A stretch of 64,000 nucleotides of DNA. Origin: Selaginella moellendorffii. Lineage: Eukaryota; Plantae; Lycopodiophyta. The position numbers and the translations under genes were made by a program. Location: the NCBI RefSeq assembly GCF_000143415.4, contig NW_003314263.1, forward strand, positions 3,354,956-3,418,955. The letters are read 5' to 3'. Within the stretch, counting starts at the first letter, position 1. Each line of letters starts with the position of its first letter. The notes under the pieces are model-generated. The model saw only the letters and a list, made by a program, of their open reading frames with translations, made no database searches and was not told the DNA's origin. Shown in pieces: positions 9,000 through 25,924 of this stretch.

Positions 9000-9520
9000 T
9001 GTAAACTTCACTTGTATCCAGAGCTCACCCATTACCACTTGGCTCAAGGTAGATGTTCTCAATCCCGCTCCCTTGAAACACAAGCTCGAGCATGCCTAAC
9101 TCTTCCCTCTGCCAAGGCCTCCACGATCTGCCATCTTACACGTTTCTGTAAGGCAAACTATTCTAAGCACATCATCAAGAAAATCCTGCCAAACAGCTTG
9201 AACTCATGAAATCTATGCAAAATTCATTCAGCGAGGTTTGGGTATATGCTGTTTACTTTAAACTCTGCCAACTTTGTGATGGATTTTCTTAAAGAGAAGA
9301 GACAGCAACGGGTAGCATTTCGAGTCTCAGCGCGCTGAGTTTGTGTTTCACGGGAACTCGATTCTTAAACAAGACCTTGATCCCAGCAAAGCCAAGTGGA
9401 GAAGTTCTAATAGAACCTGCAGATCTTAACAGTGTCTTAAGAAGAAAATATCCAGCAAATTAAACTTGGATCTTCCATACACTGTGAATTCAGCTGAAGC
9501 TTCCATTGCTCGTTTGCCGC
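9000..9520 (+). pseudogene. Decayed copy of the WWE-PARP-like gene
   Basis: GAGTTTGTGTTTCACGGG...CTTAAACAAGACCTTGATCCCAGCAAAGCCAAG (~9337-9396) aligns with 10223-10300 (EFVFHG..ILK..LDP.KAK), with deletions. Confidence 0.7.
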
Positions 9521-9607: not shown

Positions 9608-10519
9608 ATGGCCATGCCGATGGAGCCGGGAGTTTACTGGCGAGTCAAAAACAAGGCCTGGAAGCCATACAAGCAAGACGTTGCTCTAAAGATCCTTGTC
9701 AAATATTTTGAGGTACTGTTCCTTCTTCAAAGATTGCTTTTCTTTTTCCAATTCATATTTTATAGTGGTTGAATAGCGCACTGCAATCCACAATGCCATT
9801 GGATTTGGGTGAACGAGGTTGGCACAGTATCAATTTCGGGACAATGAAGCTGAAGAGTAGACTCGGAAGATACGATAGAAGCGTCAAGATAATCCTCGCG
9901 CCCGTAGAGGACGAGCTCATCAAACTGATGGATGCCAAGTTTTTGGAGTCGACTGTCCTCCCTTATCATTCCGGGATTACTTTTTCGCAAATCCATCCAA
10001 ACAAATTATCCCCGGCTACAAAGATCTACAAGAAGTTCGTGAGAGCTCTCCAATGCTACGCCACCCTCCACGACAAGAGCATCTTGGGTACGTAAACTCT
10101 ACAAGTCTGCCAGCTTTTCACGCTCTTCCTGCCAACCTTTGTGCTAAGTTTCTTTGGTGGGTAATGCAGATGAGATGCGGCAAGCGGTGAACAAGTGCAA
10201 CATCTCAAGCCTCAAATCGTTGGAGTTTGTGTTTCATGGAAGCTGGCAGAAAAACATAAGCTCCATCCTTAAACGGGGTCTTGATCCCAAGAAAGCCAAG
10301 GACAGTGGCTTTGGACCCTTTCTGTGGGTTGGAAAGACTCCACGGGTGAGCTGGAGTTACTGTGGTTGCGACCCACGTACAATGGTGCTGTTTTTGGAGC
10401 TCAAAAATCATGGCGAGAGCGACTGGACCTGGGATGGCAGACGAAGTGTACCACTTAACAAGAGCCATGTCTTACTGCCAGTTGCAAAACTAGTTATAAA
10501 CTCGCTCTACGATAGCTGA
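9608..10519 (+). CDS. WWE domain + PARP-like ADP-ribosyltransferase domain protein (exons 9608-9712, 9766-10087, 10149-10519)
   Basis: GT-AG introns keep frame. N-term YWRVKNKAWKPY...HSINFGTMKLK...RSVKI fits WWE. C-term FVFHGS..NISSILKRGLDP...GFGPFLWVG...SWSY...MVLFLEL...VLLPVAKL fits the PARP catalytic fold. Confidence 0.75.
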
Positions 10520-10611
10520 TACTTCACCATCTTTTTTTTGTATGCCAAAAGTTGATTGACATTGTGTGTGTCCATCGTTTTTTTGTATGCCAGAAGTTGA
10601 TTAACATTGTG

Positions 10612-10615
<4 letters not shown>

Positions 10616-10651
<36 letters not shown>
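10616..10651. repeat. (GA)n microsatellite
   Basis: Uninterrupted GA run. Confidence 0.95.
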
Positions 10652-10655
<4 letters not shown>

Positions 10656-10763: not shown

Positions 10764-12019
10764 ATGAGCGACGAGGAAGTGAGCGAGGCGGTGGTGATGG
10801 CGGAGGCGCCGCCGGTCAAGAAGAAGAGCGTCAAGATCGCCGCCGCTGCCATCGCCAGCGACGAGGCAGCGGATCCCAGCGGCGCCGTCAATGTGGGCGG
10901 CGATCGCAAGGCCAAGAAGGTCATCGTGGCCATCGACGAGAGCCAAGAAAGCATCCGAGCTCTCCGCTATGCTCTCGACACTGTCGTCCAGCCCGGGGAT
11001 GGGCTTGTGCTGCTACACTCGCAGTTCATGCCCCATAGCTACGTTGGTCCCGGCGGCCCAGGTACTAATCTTCTTCTCGTTCTAGCTTTTTCCATAGAGA
11101 ATGTGGGGCTTGCTCCTCTTCTTTTTCTCTTTCGAGCTATGGTTTGAGTTCTTTGCTATGGTTTCCTCCTTGCTCCTTGAGTGTGGATGTCTTTCTCGTT
11201 GGGATTAGAGCTATGGGTGTTAGATCTTTTGTCTTTGGCACCAAAGTTTGGTCCTTGTGATCTGCGCTTCACACGCATTTCCGTCAGCTCTAAAACCAGG
11301 TAAAGCTTCGTTGGTTTTTGTTAGAGGATCCAGTCTATAGAGTTTTTGTGATCTGCGCTTCACACGCATGTCCATCAGCTCTTAAACCAGGTAAAGCTTC
11401 GTTGGTTGTTGCTAGAAGATTCAGTCCATAGAGTTTTTTTTTGTGATCTGTGCTTCCATCAGCTCTAAAACCAGGTAAAGCTTCGTTGGTTTCTGCTAGA
11501 GGATTCAGTCTATGCTTTTCTACTAGCTTTCATTCCTTGAGCTTTGGCTTTGGTAGATCTTTTCTTCCTTGGCTTTTAGCTTGAAACGCAAAGACATTGG
11601 TTCTGTAGGCTTCTACATCACTCCCGACTTGGTGGCCGCCACAAGGAAGCACCAGGAGAACTCAAGCAAGGTCTTGCTCGACAAAGCCAAGAGGATTTGC
11701 GGCGATGCCAATGTGGGCTCCTCTTCTGTGTTTAAGATGGTCTTTTATGCACGTTTCTCGCAGGTCCACCACCCAGAGCTTCTGATGGCTACTGGAGATC
11801 CTCGCGACAGTATCTGCGACGCCGTGGAAAAGATCCATGCCGACTTGCTGGTGATGGGAAGCCGCGGTCACGGAGCCATCAAACGGTGAGCTCTCACTTT
11901 CTTCTCGAAGATCACTAAAGCTCTTTTACTTTCTCGACCGACACAGGACTTTTCTTGGCAGTGTGAGCGACTATTGTACTCACAACGCGAAATGCCCGGT
12001 TTTGATCGTCCGAAAGTGA
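10764..12019 (+). CDS. Universal stress protein A-like (multi-exon)
   Basis: KVIVAIDESQES..AL; GDPRDSICDAVEK..ADLLVMGSRGHGAIKR/TFLGSVSDYCTHNAKCPVLIV USP motifs across four exons. Confidence 0.93.
11257..11512 (+). repeat. Three ~90-bp tandem repeats in USP intron 1
   Basis: TGTGATCTG.GCTTC...TCAGCTCT(A/T)AAACCAGGTAAAGCTTCGTTGGTT...CAGTC repeated three times. Confidence 0.9.
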
Positions 12020-12133: not shown

Positions 12134-14357
12134 TTACAGTGACAGCAGCCTCCGCTGCTTAAAGAATAATACGAATGCGAGAAAGATCGCGATGCCAGCA
12201 ACGCCAGACGTGATGAGAATCCACTTGAAAGCTCGCGGCTCGTCAAAGAGGTCAATCTGGATGTTCATCCCGAAAACACCCGCAATCACGCCAAAAATCG
12301 CCACCACGAACGTCGCGGTCGTGAGCAGCAACTCGAACTGGATCAGCTGGTTCCTCACATTGTCCTGGACGATCAAAACCAAAGACCATCGATCAAAAAC
12401 CGAAAAACCTTGGATCGACAACTTCTCGGAAAGTACCAGTTGGATGTTGATGAAATCCTCGGTGTCGTCAATGTACTCCTTGAGCTGTGTATAACCAGCG
12501 AGATTAACACGGATAACACCACGAGCCTTTCTTTTTTTCACTCGAAAAACTCGAAACCTTCGCCTTACCGAGGTGAGCTTGTTGAGCGTGCCATCGATGA
12601 CAACAAAGTAGGCCTCGAGCAGCATCTCCAGCTCCTCCACTCGCTCCGTTTCACTGTCCGAGCCGGGTGGCTGGACCAAGAGGTTTCTTCCCAGGCTCAT
12701 CGTCTTGTCCAGGCTCTTGATCTTCTCGGTCGGCGGGCTGCCAACCGGAGACACAGGGGCCGACACCGACGCACAGACGTTGTTTGAGTACAAGAAGCCC
12801 TCGGCTCGCTCCTTCTTCTCGGTTAGATACATCTCGGCCATGTCACCGTCGTCGTCCATGAGGTGCTCGATCTCGTCCCGGACCTGGAAGTTCGTGTGAG
12901 ATGAAGTATCAATGAGGTTTGTGAGCTTGGGAGGCTCGAACAAACACCAGTGAAGTTGGAACGAAGATGAAAGAGCAAGGAGTGTGAACAGAACCAAAGT
13001 TCGTGTGAGAAGAGAGAAGCAAAGATCAACAAGTGAGGTTTGTGAGCTCGGGAAGCTCAAGAAGATGGAGTAAAGTTGGAACGAAGAACAAGGTGTGACT
13101 CCAGCAAACTTATAGGAGAGAATGAGAAGAGAGAAGCAAAGATCAACAATGAGGTTTGTGAGCTTGGGAAGCTGGAGGAAACACCAGTGAAGTTGGAACG
13201 AAAATGAAAGAACTAGGAGTGTGACTTAGTGGTTTCAATGGAAAGAAATGAAAGAACTAGGAGTGTGACTTAGTGGTTTCAATGGAAAGAAAGCTTCCAA
13301 AGGGGAAACGGAGTAAAAGCAGTACCTTTTGGACTCTCCTGGTGAGTGCCACGAGCCTGCTCTTAAGCCTACGAACTCGCTCCAGGTTGAGCGTGCTGAT
13401 CTTCGAGGTTAGATCGTCCAGAACTGGATACGCTTCCTCTTCAAGCTCTGTAGCCTGTCAAAAAGAGCAAAAAGACCACCGGTGAGTAGCAAAAAACGTG
13501 CCACAGGAAAGAGGAGAAAGAACAAAAGAGAAAAAAGAAGCAATCAGTAGTAGTATCACAGAAAAAGCAAAAGGCACCAAAAGAGAAAAAAAAAATATTG
13601 AAAAATCTCAGAGAAGAAAAAAAGAAAAGCATGAAAGTTCTTCCAAAGTTTTCTTCCAAGAATCGAGGAACTAGAACTTGGTTACCTGTGTGTCAAGATA
13701 CGTGCACGCCGACTCCAGCGCCACCTCGAGCGCTCGAAACTCGAACGGCAAATCGTCCGCTGCCGACGATCCGCTAAACATGTCCGTCTCTCTCATCAGC
13801 GCCGCCCTCCTCATCTCCTGCTTGGCCGGATGATCCTCAGTCCCACACTCCCAGCTCCCTCCTCCACCACCTCCACCACCTCCAAATCCAATCGCTCCAA
13901 TCCCACCACCACCACCATATCTCCCGGCGATGTTGCTACTGCTCGAGGAGCTCGTCATCCTCGGCATCAATCGCCGCTGGAGCTCGCTCACGTACTGGAG
14001 CACGTAGTGATCCAGCGAATTCAAGAGCAGCACCTCGTCCGCGGTGATGATACACCGGATTTGCTCCAAGTTGACAACGATGGCCTTCTCTCGTCCCAGC
14101 AGCGTGGAAGGATAGACAAAGAGTGGATCCAGCAGCCGCAAGTCGCGAGCCGGAAGCTCACACCTCCTCATGATGCTGAACTTGTCCATCTCTAGCACCT
14201 GGGAATTGCCCGCGCGGTCGATCCGGATCCACGACCGGATGCCCTGCCCGCGCTTCTTCAATCCCACCACGTCCATCCCCTGGAAGAGCGGCTTGGGCAG
14301 ATTGGAAGTGGGCGATTGCGCGCGATGGAGGAGCTTGTATCTCAGATGATCGCCCAT
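12134..14357 (-). CDS. MRS2: MRS2/MGT (CorA-family) magnesium transporter
   Basis: LPARDLRLLDPLFVYPSTLLGREKAIVVNLEQIR; LPFEFRALEVALE; GVFGMN motif in the last exon. Confidence 0.95.
12910..13292. repeat. Tandem repeats in an MRS2 intron (three ~120-bp units plus an exact ~45-bp duplication)
   Basis: TGAGGTTTGTGAGCT.GG.AG...AAGTTGGAACGAA occurs 3x; AAATGAAAGAACTAGGAGTGTGACTTAGTGGTTTCAATGGAAAGAAA occurs 2x. Confidence 0.85.
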
Positions 14358-18099: not shown

Positions 18100-18700
18100 T
18101 AGCCTTTATACTTGTGCGACTGGCAGGAAAACATCAGCCTTGTCAAGCGGCAAAATTCGTCTGTCATCAGTCCGGTTGGATTTACCATGATTTGTGAGTT
18201 CCAAGAACCATTGGTTTCTCACAGCTCTGGCTCCTGCAATACTCTGCACTCACAACTGGAGTTTTTCCAACCCACAAAAAACGGCCATGGCCAGTGTCTT
18301 CAAGCTCTCAAGGATGGAGCTTATTTTTTGCAGCGGGCTTCCATGAAACACAAACTCCAAAGATCTGAGACCCAAGATGCTGCATTGCTCCACCATTCGA
18401 TCCAAGTTTCAGTAATCATGTAATCAGGCCTTTGTAAAGGAAAAAGGTGGCAAACATTGGTTTGAGTGGAATTCCATGGTTGTCGTGGGATGAGCGTGAT
18501 TGATGACTTGATCCAGAAAGCTGACATTGATCAGTTTGCTGAGACAATTCACGAGGTCGACCAGGATGATCTCGAGACTCCATTCATGCTTTGTGCATGT
18601 ATTTTTCACCTTCATCGCTGAAAAGTTGATGGTGTGCAAACCCCATGGATGTAACCGAGATAAAACTAATGACATTGTTGTCGGCATTCCACACTCCATC
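18100..18700 (-). pseudogene. Decayed WWE-PARP-like copy
   Basis: Minus strand gives GLHTINFSAMK, LEFVFHGSPLQKISSIL, GHGRFLWVGKTP..S..Y and LPLDKADVFLPVA in shifting frames; exon 1 not found. Confidence 0.8.
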
Positions 18701-18829
18701 CAAAAAGATAAAATAGAAAAGAATGGTGTACTTGGAAAGTATACTTTGAGCATATACTTTGTTATATGGCTAACGCTAATAACCATCATGTAATAGAAAA
18801 GGAATGAAAAATCAATATTAATTATGTAT

Positions 18830-21956: not shown

Positions 21957-22767
21957 CTAGAAGATTTTAGTAAAGACTACTTTTGCCACAGGCAGTAAAA
22001 CATTGGCCTTGTCAAGTGGCAAAGCTCGTCTGCCATCAGTACTCCAGCTGGATTCACCGTGATTTCTAAGCTCCAAAAACAGCACCATTGTTTTCTCACA
22101 GACATCCTGGCCTTTGGAATACGCTGCACTCACAATAGGAGTCTTTCCAACCCAGAGAAAACGGCCGTGGCCTTCCACCGCTTGCCGCATCTCATCTGAT
22201 CCAAGTTTCAGCTTTTGAAAATAAAAAGGTGGCAGAACTTCAAACACGTACCTATGATGCCCCTATTGACAAGGATGGTGTAGCGCTCGAGAGCTCTCAC
22301 AAACCTTCTGTAAGTCTCTGTAGCAGCAGGAGAGTCGAATTGGTTTGGTTGGAATTCTAGGCTTGACTCATGATGAGCTCTCTGAATGACTTGCTCCAGA
22401 AATTTGACATCGATCAGTTTTCTCAGACAATCCACGAGGTCGACAGGTATATTGAGGATGATCTTGAGGGTCCATTCACGCTTTGTGCATGTGTTCTTCA
22501 ACTTCATAGCTGAAAAGTTGACAGTGTGCAAACCCCGTGGATATAACCGAGATAAAGCCAATGGCATTGTAGTCGGCCTTCCACAATTCAGCCACTGTAG
22601 CTCGAAACACAAAAGCAAACGAAACTAGGAAACAAAAAGTCAAGAAAAATAGTCTGTACCTCAAAGTACTTGGCAACTATTCACCGAGCAGCTCCTCTTT
22701 TGTACGGCACCCAAGTCTTGTTGGTCAATCCCCAGTACACAACTGGTTCTATTGGATCCTTGGACAT
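21957..22767 (-). pseudogene. WWE-PARP-like copy with nonsense codon and deletion of the FHG segment
   Basis: MSKDPIEPVVYWGLTNKTWVPYKRGAAR*IVAKYFE; same intron positions as the 9608 gene; MRQAVEGHGRFLWVGKTP lacks ~38 aa including FHGS. Confidence 0.8.
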
Positions 22768-24640: not shown

Positions 24641-25924
24641 CTACATCTCCTTTTGTATCTTCTTTTGGATTTCACAAATGGTGGTGATTGCTAGAAAGAG
24701 TCCAGTTCCAGAACCAATCACTCCCATCATATTTGCAGCCACGGAAACAACACCAATACCAAACCCTCCAAGCGCTGCTGCCACTGGAATGTACCGGTCG
24801 AGCTCCTTTTTGGTCTGGGAGCTCCTGTGTCCTGGGATTGTCAATCCTTGCTCTTTCCACTCTTTCGCTATATCCTTGGAAGACGATCCAGACAATTCAA
24901 GCCATGCCTTGGAGATTAGAGTGCTAGACACCACCGTGAAGACTGAGTAAATGAGAAAATGGAATGGCTCTTGGATCATGCTCGACGGTGGATGAAAAAC
25001 CTTGTATATAGTTCCTCCCAAAGCGCCCATAATAAAATTCCTGTAACCAAATACGTGCCCCAGGCCTTCGTAAACCTTGCCCACGCTACTTGCGAGCTGA
25101 GTTAAGAACATAATTGGAGTCGTTGCCGTGTAGAACAGACGGATTGAATGATTCATATACTGGCCCCTTCCGTTTGTCACTCTGATGATCATGTTGAGAG
25201 ACTGAAGATATAATATCCCACAAATCACAACAATTGTCAAGATCAGTGTCGAGAGATTTGGGAGATAATATCTGAAGAATGAATGGCGAACTGTCCTTAC
25301 GTTGCAGCTGGATATCAACCCCCGAACCAACTCTACAACCGATCCTTCAAATTCGTCGACTCCTCGAAAGTTGGCGGTGACAGGGCTAAACGCGTGCCAA
25401 ATCACGTCCTCACAAACGCTGCACGCAGTGAAAACGGAAATTGCTGATTGCCCAACACCATATCCCTTTTCTAAAAATTCGTCCATGTAGATTAGCATCA
25501 TAACTGCTAGAACCAGCTGCAAGATCACCAACAGCGAGCTAATCATACCAATTGGGCCATACACTCCCCCAACAATGTTTAAGATCGCCAACACGACTGT
25601 GAAACACACCCCCGCCATCTTTTGTAGCTTGTTGATGGAGTCCTTCTCTTTGATGCAAATAATCTTTCCACCAACTAAAAGCTGGATTGCCATACTTGCC
25701 GTTGCAATCGGACCAATACCCAAATCCATCAGTGTCCCATTTGCGTAGATCCCATAGAGTGGCAATCTACTGCTAATCATGTACACAGACACACACAAGA
25801 CTGTGTTTGCGACCTTTGTTCCCAGTGGAATCCGCAACTTTGGACTCTCAATCTCCACACTGAAAAGCTTGGTGGCCCCTGCAAACAGTCTACTCGCAGC
25901 TCCCTTCATTGTGGACAAAGCCAT
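24641..25924 (-). CDS. Divergent, intronless Sec61-alpha (SecY family)
   Basis: GTLMDLGIGPI, DEFLEKGYG, AFSP...EFEG, IRLFYT, ELSGSSSKDIAK..KEQ...PGHR...ELDRYIP.AAALGG, GSGTG; TATA-like TTATAAATA ~40 bp upstream. Confidence 0.92.
   Translation of the reverse strand: MALSTMKGAASRLFAGATKLFSVEIESPKLRIPLGTKVANTVLCVSVYMISSRLPLYGIYANGTLMDLGIGPIATASMAIQLLVGGKIICIKEKDSINKLQKMAGVCFTVVLAILNIVGGVYGPIGMISSLLVILQLVLAVMMLIYMDEFLEKGYGVGQSAISVFTACSVCEDVIWHAFSPVTANFRGVDEFEGSVVELVRGLISSCNVRTVRHSFFRYYLPNLSTLILTIVVICGILYLQSLNMIIRVTNGRGQYMNHSIRLFYTATTPIMFLTQLASSVGKVYEGLGHVFGYRNFIMGALGGTIYKVFHPPSSMIQEPFHFLIYSVFTVVSSTLISKAWLELSGSSSKDIAKEWKEQGLTIPGHRSSQTKKELDRYIPVAAALGGFGIGVVSVAANMMGVIGSGTGLFLAITTICEIQKKIQKEM

Follow-up and report, generated by a model that had tools for sequence, protein, structure and literature searches.

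The 64,000-nucleotide (nt) stretch of Selaginella moellendorffii DNA analyzed here (contig NW_003314263.1, positions 3,354,956 to 3,418,955; hereafter the window) carries at 9608-10519 of its forward strand an intact nuclear gene of three exons whose product is predicted to join a WWE-like N-terminal head to a compact PARP-type ADP-ribosyltransferase (ART) domain. We are highly confident that the gene is real and that it has the ART fold, and it is probably functional. The explanation that we prefer as a whole, an intact gene for a protein with a WWE-like head and a compact ART domain which still binds nicotinamide adenine dinucleotide (NAD+), is more tentative and falls slightly short of an even chance.

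The coding sequence consists of three pieces on the forward strand which are joined in frame through GT..AG introns to give 774 nt and 258 amino acids (aa), and it is laid out as follows.

Exon 1, 9608-9712, forward strand: 35 codons, donor GT at 9713; first half of the WWE-like head.
Intron 1, 9713-9765, forward strand: 53 nt, GT..AG, phase 0, acceptor AG at 9764-9765.
Exon 2, 9766-10087, forward strand: 107 codons plus 1 base, donor GT at 10088.
Within exon 2, up to about 9894, forward strand: second half of the WWE-like head (HSINFGTMKLK...RSVKIIL).
Within exon 2, from about 9973, forward strand: N-terminal strand and helix of the ART domain (ITFSQIHPNK...IYKKFVRAL), aligned with the paralogs.
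Intron 2, 10088-10169, forward strand: 82 nt, GT..AG, phase 1, acceptor AG at 10168-10169.
Exon 3, 10170-10519, forward strand: 2 bases plus 115 codons and the stop codon TGA at 10517-10519; ART core.

Along the 258 aa a WWE-like head of about 80 aa is followed by a helical linker, encoded in exon 2 between the end of the head and the start of the ART domain, and then by the compact PARP-type ART domain of about 150 aa, which extends to the C-terminus. An earlier note, drawn from the letters of the sequence, had proposed three exons spliced in frame to about 265 aa; the splice sites and joins can be read directly and bear out the splicing, whereas the length has to be corrected to 258 aa. The motifs which it named are all present with minor slips in their spacing (YWRVKNKAWKPY, SINFGTMK, RSVKI, FVFHGSWQKNISSILKRGLDP, GFGPFLWVGK, SWSY and the C-terminal LLPVAKLVI). 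Left unspliced, the frame of exon 1 runs into a stop at 9770-9772, and two further copies of the gene in the window (copies 2 and 3, described below) preserve the first part of exon 2 (WLN....TMPL.L) in frame. The codon split across intron 2 (G/AT) encodes Asp, and both the position and the phase of this intron are identical in copy 2 and in L001, a paralog at another locus which is the gene of SELMODRAFT_426508 (database protein P0003) on S. moellendorffii scaffold GL377648.1. The 258-codon frame is more than a product of chance, because the exon structure and the phase-1 intron 2 recur in this paralog.

All searches and fold predictions used single exons, or P0003, as a proxy for the spliced protein. 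In a phmmer search of exon 3 against 1.84 billion representative sequences, 55 relatives were found at E<=1e-3 (best 1.9e-8), and none of these matches apart from P0003 is a close relative. The Pfam PARP domain (PF00644) was detected at E<=0.001 in 50 of the 54 phmmer relatives scanned, and all nine non-Selaginella relatives which were scanned singly clear the Pfam cut-off. The relatives share a compact domain of the pattern VFHGT..NI..IL.NGLDP..R.GQAYGPGEYF...P..S.SYC.GG..MLVF... VVV....HQLP, and in the alignment the wider ART family shows an F..NP...Y.RF..A element which matches the strand and helix encoded in exon 2. A family profile, built from the compact-ART relatives and the two Selaginella exons and searched against solved structures, matched ZAP/PARP13 (7.6e-8) and PARP16 (1.2e-7), followed by PARP12, Tpt1, PARP1, PARP10 and PARP15 (1e-7 to 1e-4); exons 2 and 3 searched against solved structures by phmmer gave noise and a weak Tpt1 motif match only.

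The AlphaFold2 model of exon 3, obtained with the family alignment, reached a predicted local distance difference test score (pLDDT) of 79 and a predicted template-modelling score of 0.72; it covers exon 3 only, the first ART strand and helix being located in exon 2. The predicted elements are the helix NISSILKRGLDP, the strands FLWVG and MVLFLEL, an 11-residue loop, the strand RRSVP and the last strand LLPVAKLVI. The top 50 Foldseek matches of this model were without exception ART folds (PARP or Tpt1), with PARP16 in first place, and VIA-align superposed 100-112 of the 115 residues onto PARP14, 10, 12, 15, 16 and the tankyrases (Z 8.5-9.0, root-mean-square deviation about 3 A). The compact PARP-type ART pattern that had been noticed in the C-terminal part is therefore recovered by Pfam on the relatives, by the family profile and by fold prediction with Foldseek and VIA-align in agreement. 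The outcome for exon 3 itself was divided, as its model has the ART fold whereas its own Pfam PARP score (E 6e-4, 19.8 bits) falls short of the cut-off of 26.7 bits.

For the active site, residues are numbered from the first full codon of exon 3. The focal protein retains 17 of the 31 columns which are conserved to at least 85% in the relatives, including His22-Gly23, Asn28, Ile32, Gly-Leu-Asp-Pro 36-39, Ser60, Tyr63, Cys64 and Leu-Pro 102-103. His22-Gly23 together with Ser60 and Tyr63, the equivalents of PARP1 S904 and Y907, lie in columns where the relatives have H, G and Y in 100% and S in 91% of the cases. The column of the triad Tyr (PARP1 Y896), which is Tyr in 100% of the relatives, is occupied by Trp52. 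The third triad site, whose equivalence is deduced from the alignment and the predicted strands, is held by Ser92 (Thr in L001) at the start of the predicted catalytic strand (residues 90-94, with Arg-Arg-Ser against Lys-Arg-Thr in L001); in the alignment there is neither a Glu at this site (PARP1 E988) nor a conserved acidic residue nearby. The earlier reading of the triad, with His kept, Tyr replaced by Trp and no Glu at the third site, thus agrees with the alignment columns of the relatives. The loop preceding the predicted catalytic strand has 11 residues; in human mono-ADP-ribosyltransferases (mono-ARTs) this loop is short, with 6 residues, and in Arabidopsis PARP1 it has 38 (PMC2848248, Table 2). 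The motif FLWVGK is present in all four copies which keep this part (the focal gene, L001 and both pseudogenes described below), identifying it as a family trait instead of a sign of decay in the focal copy.

That the N-terminal domain is homologous to WWE seems likely, although with less confidence than the fold of the ART domain. Exon 1 contains two Trp within VYWRVKNKAWKPY and a helix which terminates in KYFE. On direct reading both Trp of WWE are present, but the eponymous Glu is apparently missing. When residues 1-125 of the paralog P0003 were scanned, the Pfam WWE domain (PF02825) was matched over profile positions 4-63 of 67 with an E-value of 0.0043 and 17.8 bits against a cut-off of 21.1, and the UniRef name of P0003 is 'WWE domain-containing protein'. 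Exons 1 and 2 taken singly gave no Pfam match; the WWE-like domain of the focal gene is split by intron 1. Of the N-terminal WWE domain proposed in the earlier note, the quoted motifs are thus present, whereas the Pfam match stays below threshold and was obtained in the paralog only. In the ESM Atlas, nine of the ten nearest structural rows for the P0003 N-terminus contain WWE (template-modelling scores 0.41-0.53), and the structural neighbours include clusters of the non-PARP E3 ligases Deltex and MIB/HERC2; these matches derive from a low-confidence Atlas model and are leads only. The best Atlas match of the same region by language-model features was the PARP11 cluster (0.81), and exon 2 alone gave noise only. 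A profile of the N-terminal region found no match among solved structures, and the AlphaFold2 model of P0003:1-126, calculated from a 6-row alignment, was unusable (pLDDT 45.7).

A tblastn search of the window with the three exons revealed three further copies, leaving the focal gene as the only intact one of four.

Relic copy, 9331-9400, forward strand: internally deleted, with the reading AEFVFHGNSILKQDLDPSKAK (tblastn E 5e-4, frame translation); located some 210 nt before the start codon.
Copy 2, 21957-22767, reverse strand: pseudogene with the same three-exon layout and intron phases, in-frame TGA at 22683-22681 (exon 1).
Copy 3, 18109-18702, reverse strand: pseudogene in which exon 1 is missing, exon 2 is truncated and exon 3 has two or more frame shifts.

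In exon 3 of copy 2 the His-Gly..GLDP block is deleted in frame, and copies 2 and 3 are 78-79% identical at the nt level. The similarity between copies ends at the exon borders, which ruled out carriage by a transposon and identifies the copies as old gene duplicates. Together the window and L001 hold two intact copies, two pseudogenes and one relic of what is a small Selaginella gene family, gaining and losing copies.

The intact paralog L001 is flanked by BRCT and peptidase M16 genes, its downstream neighbour lying on the opposite strand. Between the focal gene and L001, aa identity amounts to 74% in exon 1, 53% in exon 2 and 66% in exon 3, and nt identity to 72-87% in the exons (exon 1 87%, exon 3 78%) against 57% in intron 2 and 49-55% in the flanks; the ATG and about 23 nt upstream of it are conserved as well. 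The dN/dS ratio (nonsynonymous to synonymous changes) of the pair is 0.58 with a bootstrap range of 0.40-0.85 (summed per exon), suggesting weak but real purifying selection. The database model of P0003 excises a false GT..AG intron of 76 nt from exon 3 (L001:10615-10690), leaving its last 37 residues out of frame; unspliced, L001:10485-10835 is an open frame which is 66% identical to the focal exon 3 and conserved with the wider ART family. In addition, intron 1 is missing from L001 together with some 16 codons of the WWE-like domain (L001:10106-10124 versus window 9713-9823), and its exon 1 runs straight into exon 2. As the segment is kept in three of four copies, its loss in L001 is derived, and this loss may cripple the head domain of the paralog.

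The relatives of exon 3 that bear a species name come from the diatom Seminavis robusta (P0034) and from Mesostigma viride (P0036), the rest being eukaryote proteins from metagenomes and transcriptomes. Many of these compact-ART relatives bear a C-terminal coiled coil, and a WWE domain was found in none of the 54 relatives scanned. Judged by these matches, the ART domain belongs to an old, short-looped PARP-like lineage which occurs in diatoms, in other microbial eukaryotes and, among streptophyte algae, in Mesostigma. In a careful IQ-TREE analysis the nearest outside relative of the Selaginella pair is the Mesostigma protein (support 95/87); the Selaginella stem measures 3.4 changes per column, and the program issued a long-branch warning. 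Vertical descent within streptophytes is plausible on this basis. No further annotated plant protein came up when the protein collections, which do not include plant genome DNA, were searched with profiles seeded by Selaginella and Mesostigma. In line with the lineage restriction suspected in the earlier note, besides one Selaginella paralog and the Mesostigma protein no annotated plant protein is close, and the family looks lineage-restricted within the limits of the collections searched.

Some individual relatives deserve mention. In the Mesostigma protein P0036, residues 33-67 follow a hydrophobic N-terminal segment, and PGIYRRKPGSRRW...FLMKIFA can be lined up by eye with the initial half of the WWE-like head in Selaginella; a correspondence of the two N-termini obtained an hhalign probability of only 2.5% and is not claimed. 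The metagenomic protein P0030 (282 aa) consists of two tandem compact ART copies which both have His-Arg (VFHRT) in place of His-Gly. The gene of P0010 lies at L002:6001-6705 (ENA ERZ27313297 k141_554141) on a 14-kb metagenome contig which is gene-dense and apparently intronless. Its neighbours there are genes for ParA, an IBR-like product and DNA polymerase B, the last split in two pieces, and the contig has the appearance of a large DNA virus or of a compact protist genome.

Two alternative origins of the gene have to be weighed. The SRO proteins of plants likewise pair a WWE with a PARP-like domain (PMC2848248), and the arrangement could in principle result from a truncated SRO/RCD1 allele or fragment, or from a piece of a longer gene with missed exons. 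We regard this as extremely improbable. The reading frame ends 6 residues past the last ART strand, no Pfam RST domain was found in exon 3 at E<=10, and a separate gene for a universal stress protein (Usp) starts at 10764, only 245 nt behind the stop codon, which leaves no room for an RST domain; its absence, as stated in the earlier note, is thereby confirmed. The stop lies at nearly the same place in the focal gene, L001 and copy 2, three copies at different loci with different neighbours (that of L001 even being on the other strand), and at the other end of the gene the ATG with its preceding 23 or so nt is conserved in L001. Moreover, the triad His and Tyr are missing from RCD1, where Leu and His occupy their sites, and RCD1 shows no NAD binding (PMC2848248); the focal protein has retained the His. 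The best solved matches of the family profile are ZAP/PARP13, PARP16 and PARP12, with RCD1 not among the best 60. By its sequence the family is distinct from the SROs, and the earlier note's reading of the protein as something other than a truncated SRO is supported. The other alternative is a sideways acquisition, in which a microbial eukaryote or giant virus would have supplied the ART module and the host the WWE to which it was fused. Nearly all relatives are diatom proteins or metagenomic and transcriptomic proteins of eukaryotes, none of them bears WWE, and the contig of P0010, dense and intronless, also encodes DNA polymerase B and ParA, all of which would suit such a transfer. On the other hand, the nearest outside relative in the tree is a streptophyte, the Selaginella pair is nested in no microbial subgroup and the genes carry short spliceosomal introns like those of the host, making a sideways acquisition quite improbable.

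In the explanation preferred here, of an intact gene for an NAD+-binding protein, the nicotinamide pocket is largely kept, with His-Gly, Ser-x-x-Tyr and an aromatic Trp substituting for the stacking Tyr, and the catalytic strand is preceded by a short loop as in mono-ARTs. From these two features we take retention of NAD+ binding to be most likely and rate its chance as somewhat better than even. Should the protein be an active enzyme, it would pass on ADP-ribose as single units by a substrate-assisted route like that of PARP10, with no need of a catalytic Glu, and the WWE-like head would dock the protein on ADP-ribosylated partners. Transferase activity as such is possible but doubtful.

A number of observations weigh against this explanation. 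Of the 14 conserved columns that were lost, 8 are found at 42-53, where R.GQAYGPGEYF, a loop and strand almost invariant in the family, has become A..S.GFGPFLWV, and both the triad Tyr and the adjacent conserved Glu are replaced. Proven mono-ARTs have I/L/V/Y at the third triad position, which is Ser/Thr here. Exon 3 on its own does not reach the Pfam PARP cut-off, the evidence for WWE is sub-threshold and comes from the paralog only, and the N-terminal model is unusable. The grouping with Mesostigma unites long branches, and a tree without Mesostigma puts the Selaginella pair on a deep polytomy, outside any microbial group. Furthermore, a dN/dS of 0.58 indicates weak constraint only, the family is decaying with three of the four window copies dead, and the spliced product has no matching protein in a collection of 5.8 billion proteins.

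Because the strand at the NAD site is so heavily remodelled, a pseudo-enzyme appears about as likely as an enzyme. As an explanation in its own right, however, an ART fold kept for binding or scaffolding (of NAD+, ADP-ribose or a protein partner) with transfer lost seems rather unlikely to us. There are precedents for it in RCD1/SRO and ZAP/PARP13, and among solved structures the family profile matches the inactive ZAP domain best; the NAD-site strand has exchanged three near-invariant residues besides the triad Tyr and the adjacent Glu, and Ser/Thr occupies the third site; and the conservation of FLWVGK across copies suggests a settled new function rather than drift. Yet the nicotinamide contacts His-Gly and Ser-x-x-Tyr are kept, in contrast to RCD1, which lost His and Tyr and with no NAD binding (PMC2848248), and the Trp could stack on nicotinamide like Tyr. 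The loss of all present function in a decaying or silent gene, with a frame that is open by luck in a dying family, is improbable as well. Two pseudogenes and one relic within 13 kb, the lack of an entry in protein collections, the weak constraint and the loss of part of the WWE-like domain in L001 would fit a dying family, whereas the 258-codon frame is intact over three exons with canonical splice sites, dN/dS is below 1 by bootstrap and the exons are conserved far above the intron and flanks.

The surroundings of the gene in the window comprise the following features.

10533-10566 and 10578-10611, just 3' of the stop codon: two copies of a 34-nt direct repeat, T7 GTATGCCA[A/G]AAGTTGATT[G/A]ACATTGTG.
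10616-10652, after the 34-nt repeats: perfect (GA)18.5 microsatellite.
10764-11147, forward strand: first exon of the Usp gene, 245 nt downstream on the same strand.
12134-14357, reverse strand: gene of an MRS2-like magnesium transporter.

Elsewhere in the window, an intronless Sec61-alpha-like open reading frame (24644-25924, reverse strand) encodes a product without an exact match in the public gene-position collection.

The biology of ADP-ribosylation in plants rests on PARP1-3 and on the inactive RCD1/SRO proteins, and our literature searches found no paper on a family combining a WWE-like head with a compact ART. If the preferred explanation is true, a separate family of this kind in a lycophyte, with a possible root among streptophyte algae, would constitute a new branch of plant ADP-ribose signalling. 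As an experiment of nature it would also show to what extent the NAD site tolerates change (Tyr to Trp, no Glu, very short loops) with the fold being kept, although its value is tempered by the family being small and decaying. A role in host-pathogen conflict has been proposed for animal WWE/macro PARPs. One may speculate that streptophytes built a PARP11-like 'reader plus writer' independently of animals, that the Selaginella branch is an active mono-ART with a previously unseen His-Trp-Ser/Thr site and that the rapid turnover of copies reflects such a conflict, a scenario which in its entirety we consider fairly improbable.

When compared with known systems, the protein resembles in its arrangement the animal WWE mono-ARTs of clade 3E (PARP11, PARP7/TIPARP and PARP12; Citarelli et al. 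2010, PMC2964712), which have the same WWE(-like) head directly before an ART domain that ends the protein. The likeness extends to the lack of a catalytic Glu and the short loop before the catalytic strand, and is also seen in the searches, where the best matches to solved structures include PARP12 and ZAP by sequence and PARP10, 12, 14 and 15 by fold, and where the N-terminus of the paralog has the PARP11 cluster as its best neighbour by language model. In contrast to clade 3E, the ART domain has about 150 instead of about 190 aa and the triad reads H-W-S/T instead of H-Y-I (or Y-Y-V) (PMC2848248, Table 2); furthermore, the similarity is only about 1e-7 at the profile level, where ZAP and PARP12 tie with PARP16 of clade 6. 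In a survey of eukaryotic PARPs the WWE-bearing clade 3 had no plant members, land plants being represented in clades 1 and 2, with the addition of clade 6 in bryophytes only (PMC2964712).

With the plant RCD1/SRO proteins (clade 2) the focal protein has in common the arrangement of WWE and PARP-like domain known from plants and a non-canonical triad, but it has no RST domain, is shorter (258 aa versus 300-600 aa) and keeps His-Gly. PARP16 was the top Foldseek match and the second in the profile search; compared to PARP16, the focal protein has neither the helical regulatory domain nor a transmembrane or hydrophobic tail, and its N-terminus is WWE-like. The closest sequence relatives of exon 3 are the compact 'GQAYGPGEYF ... 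HQLP' ARTs of diatoms, Mesostigma and microbial eukaryotes. The focal ART, PARP16 and this compact family have in common the short loop, VFHG[ST]..NI..IL..GLDP, S..YC and a last ..LP.. strand, whereas the Selaginella proteins differ from the compact family in GPFLWV for GPGEYF and (V)LLP for HQLP. Closest of all is SELMODRAFT_426508, which shares intron 2 and FLWVGK with the focal gene and differs from it in its locus and in being without intron 1.

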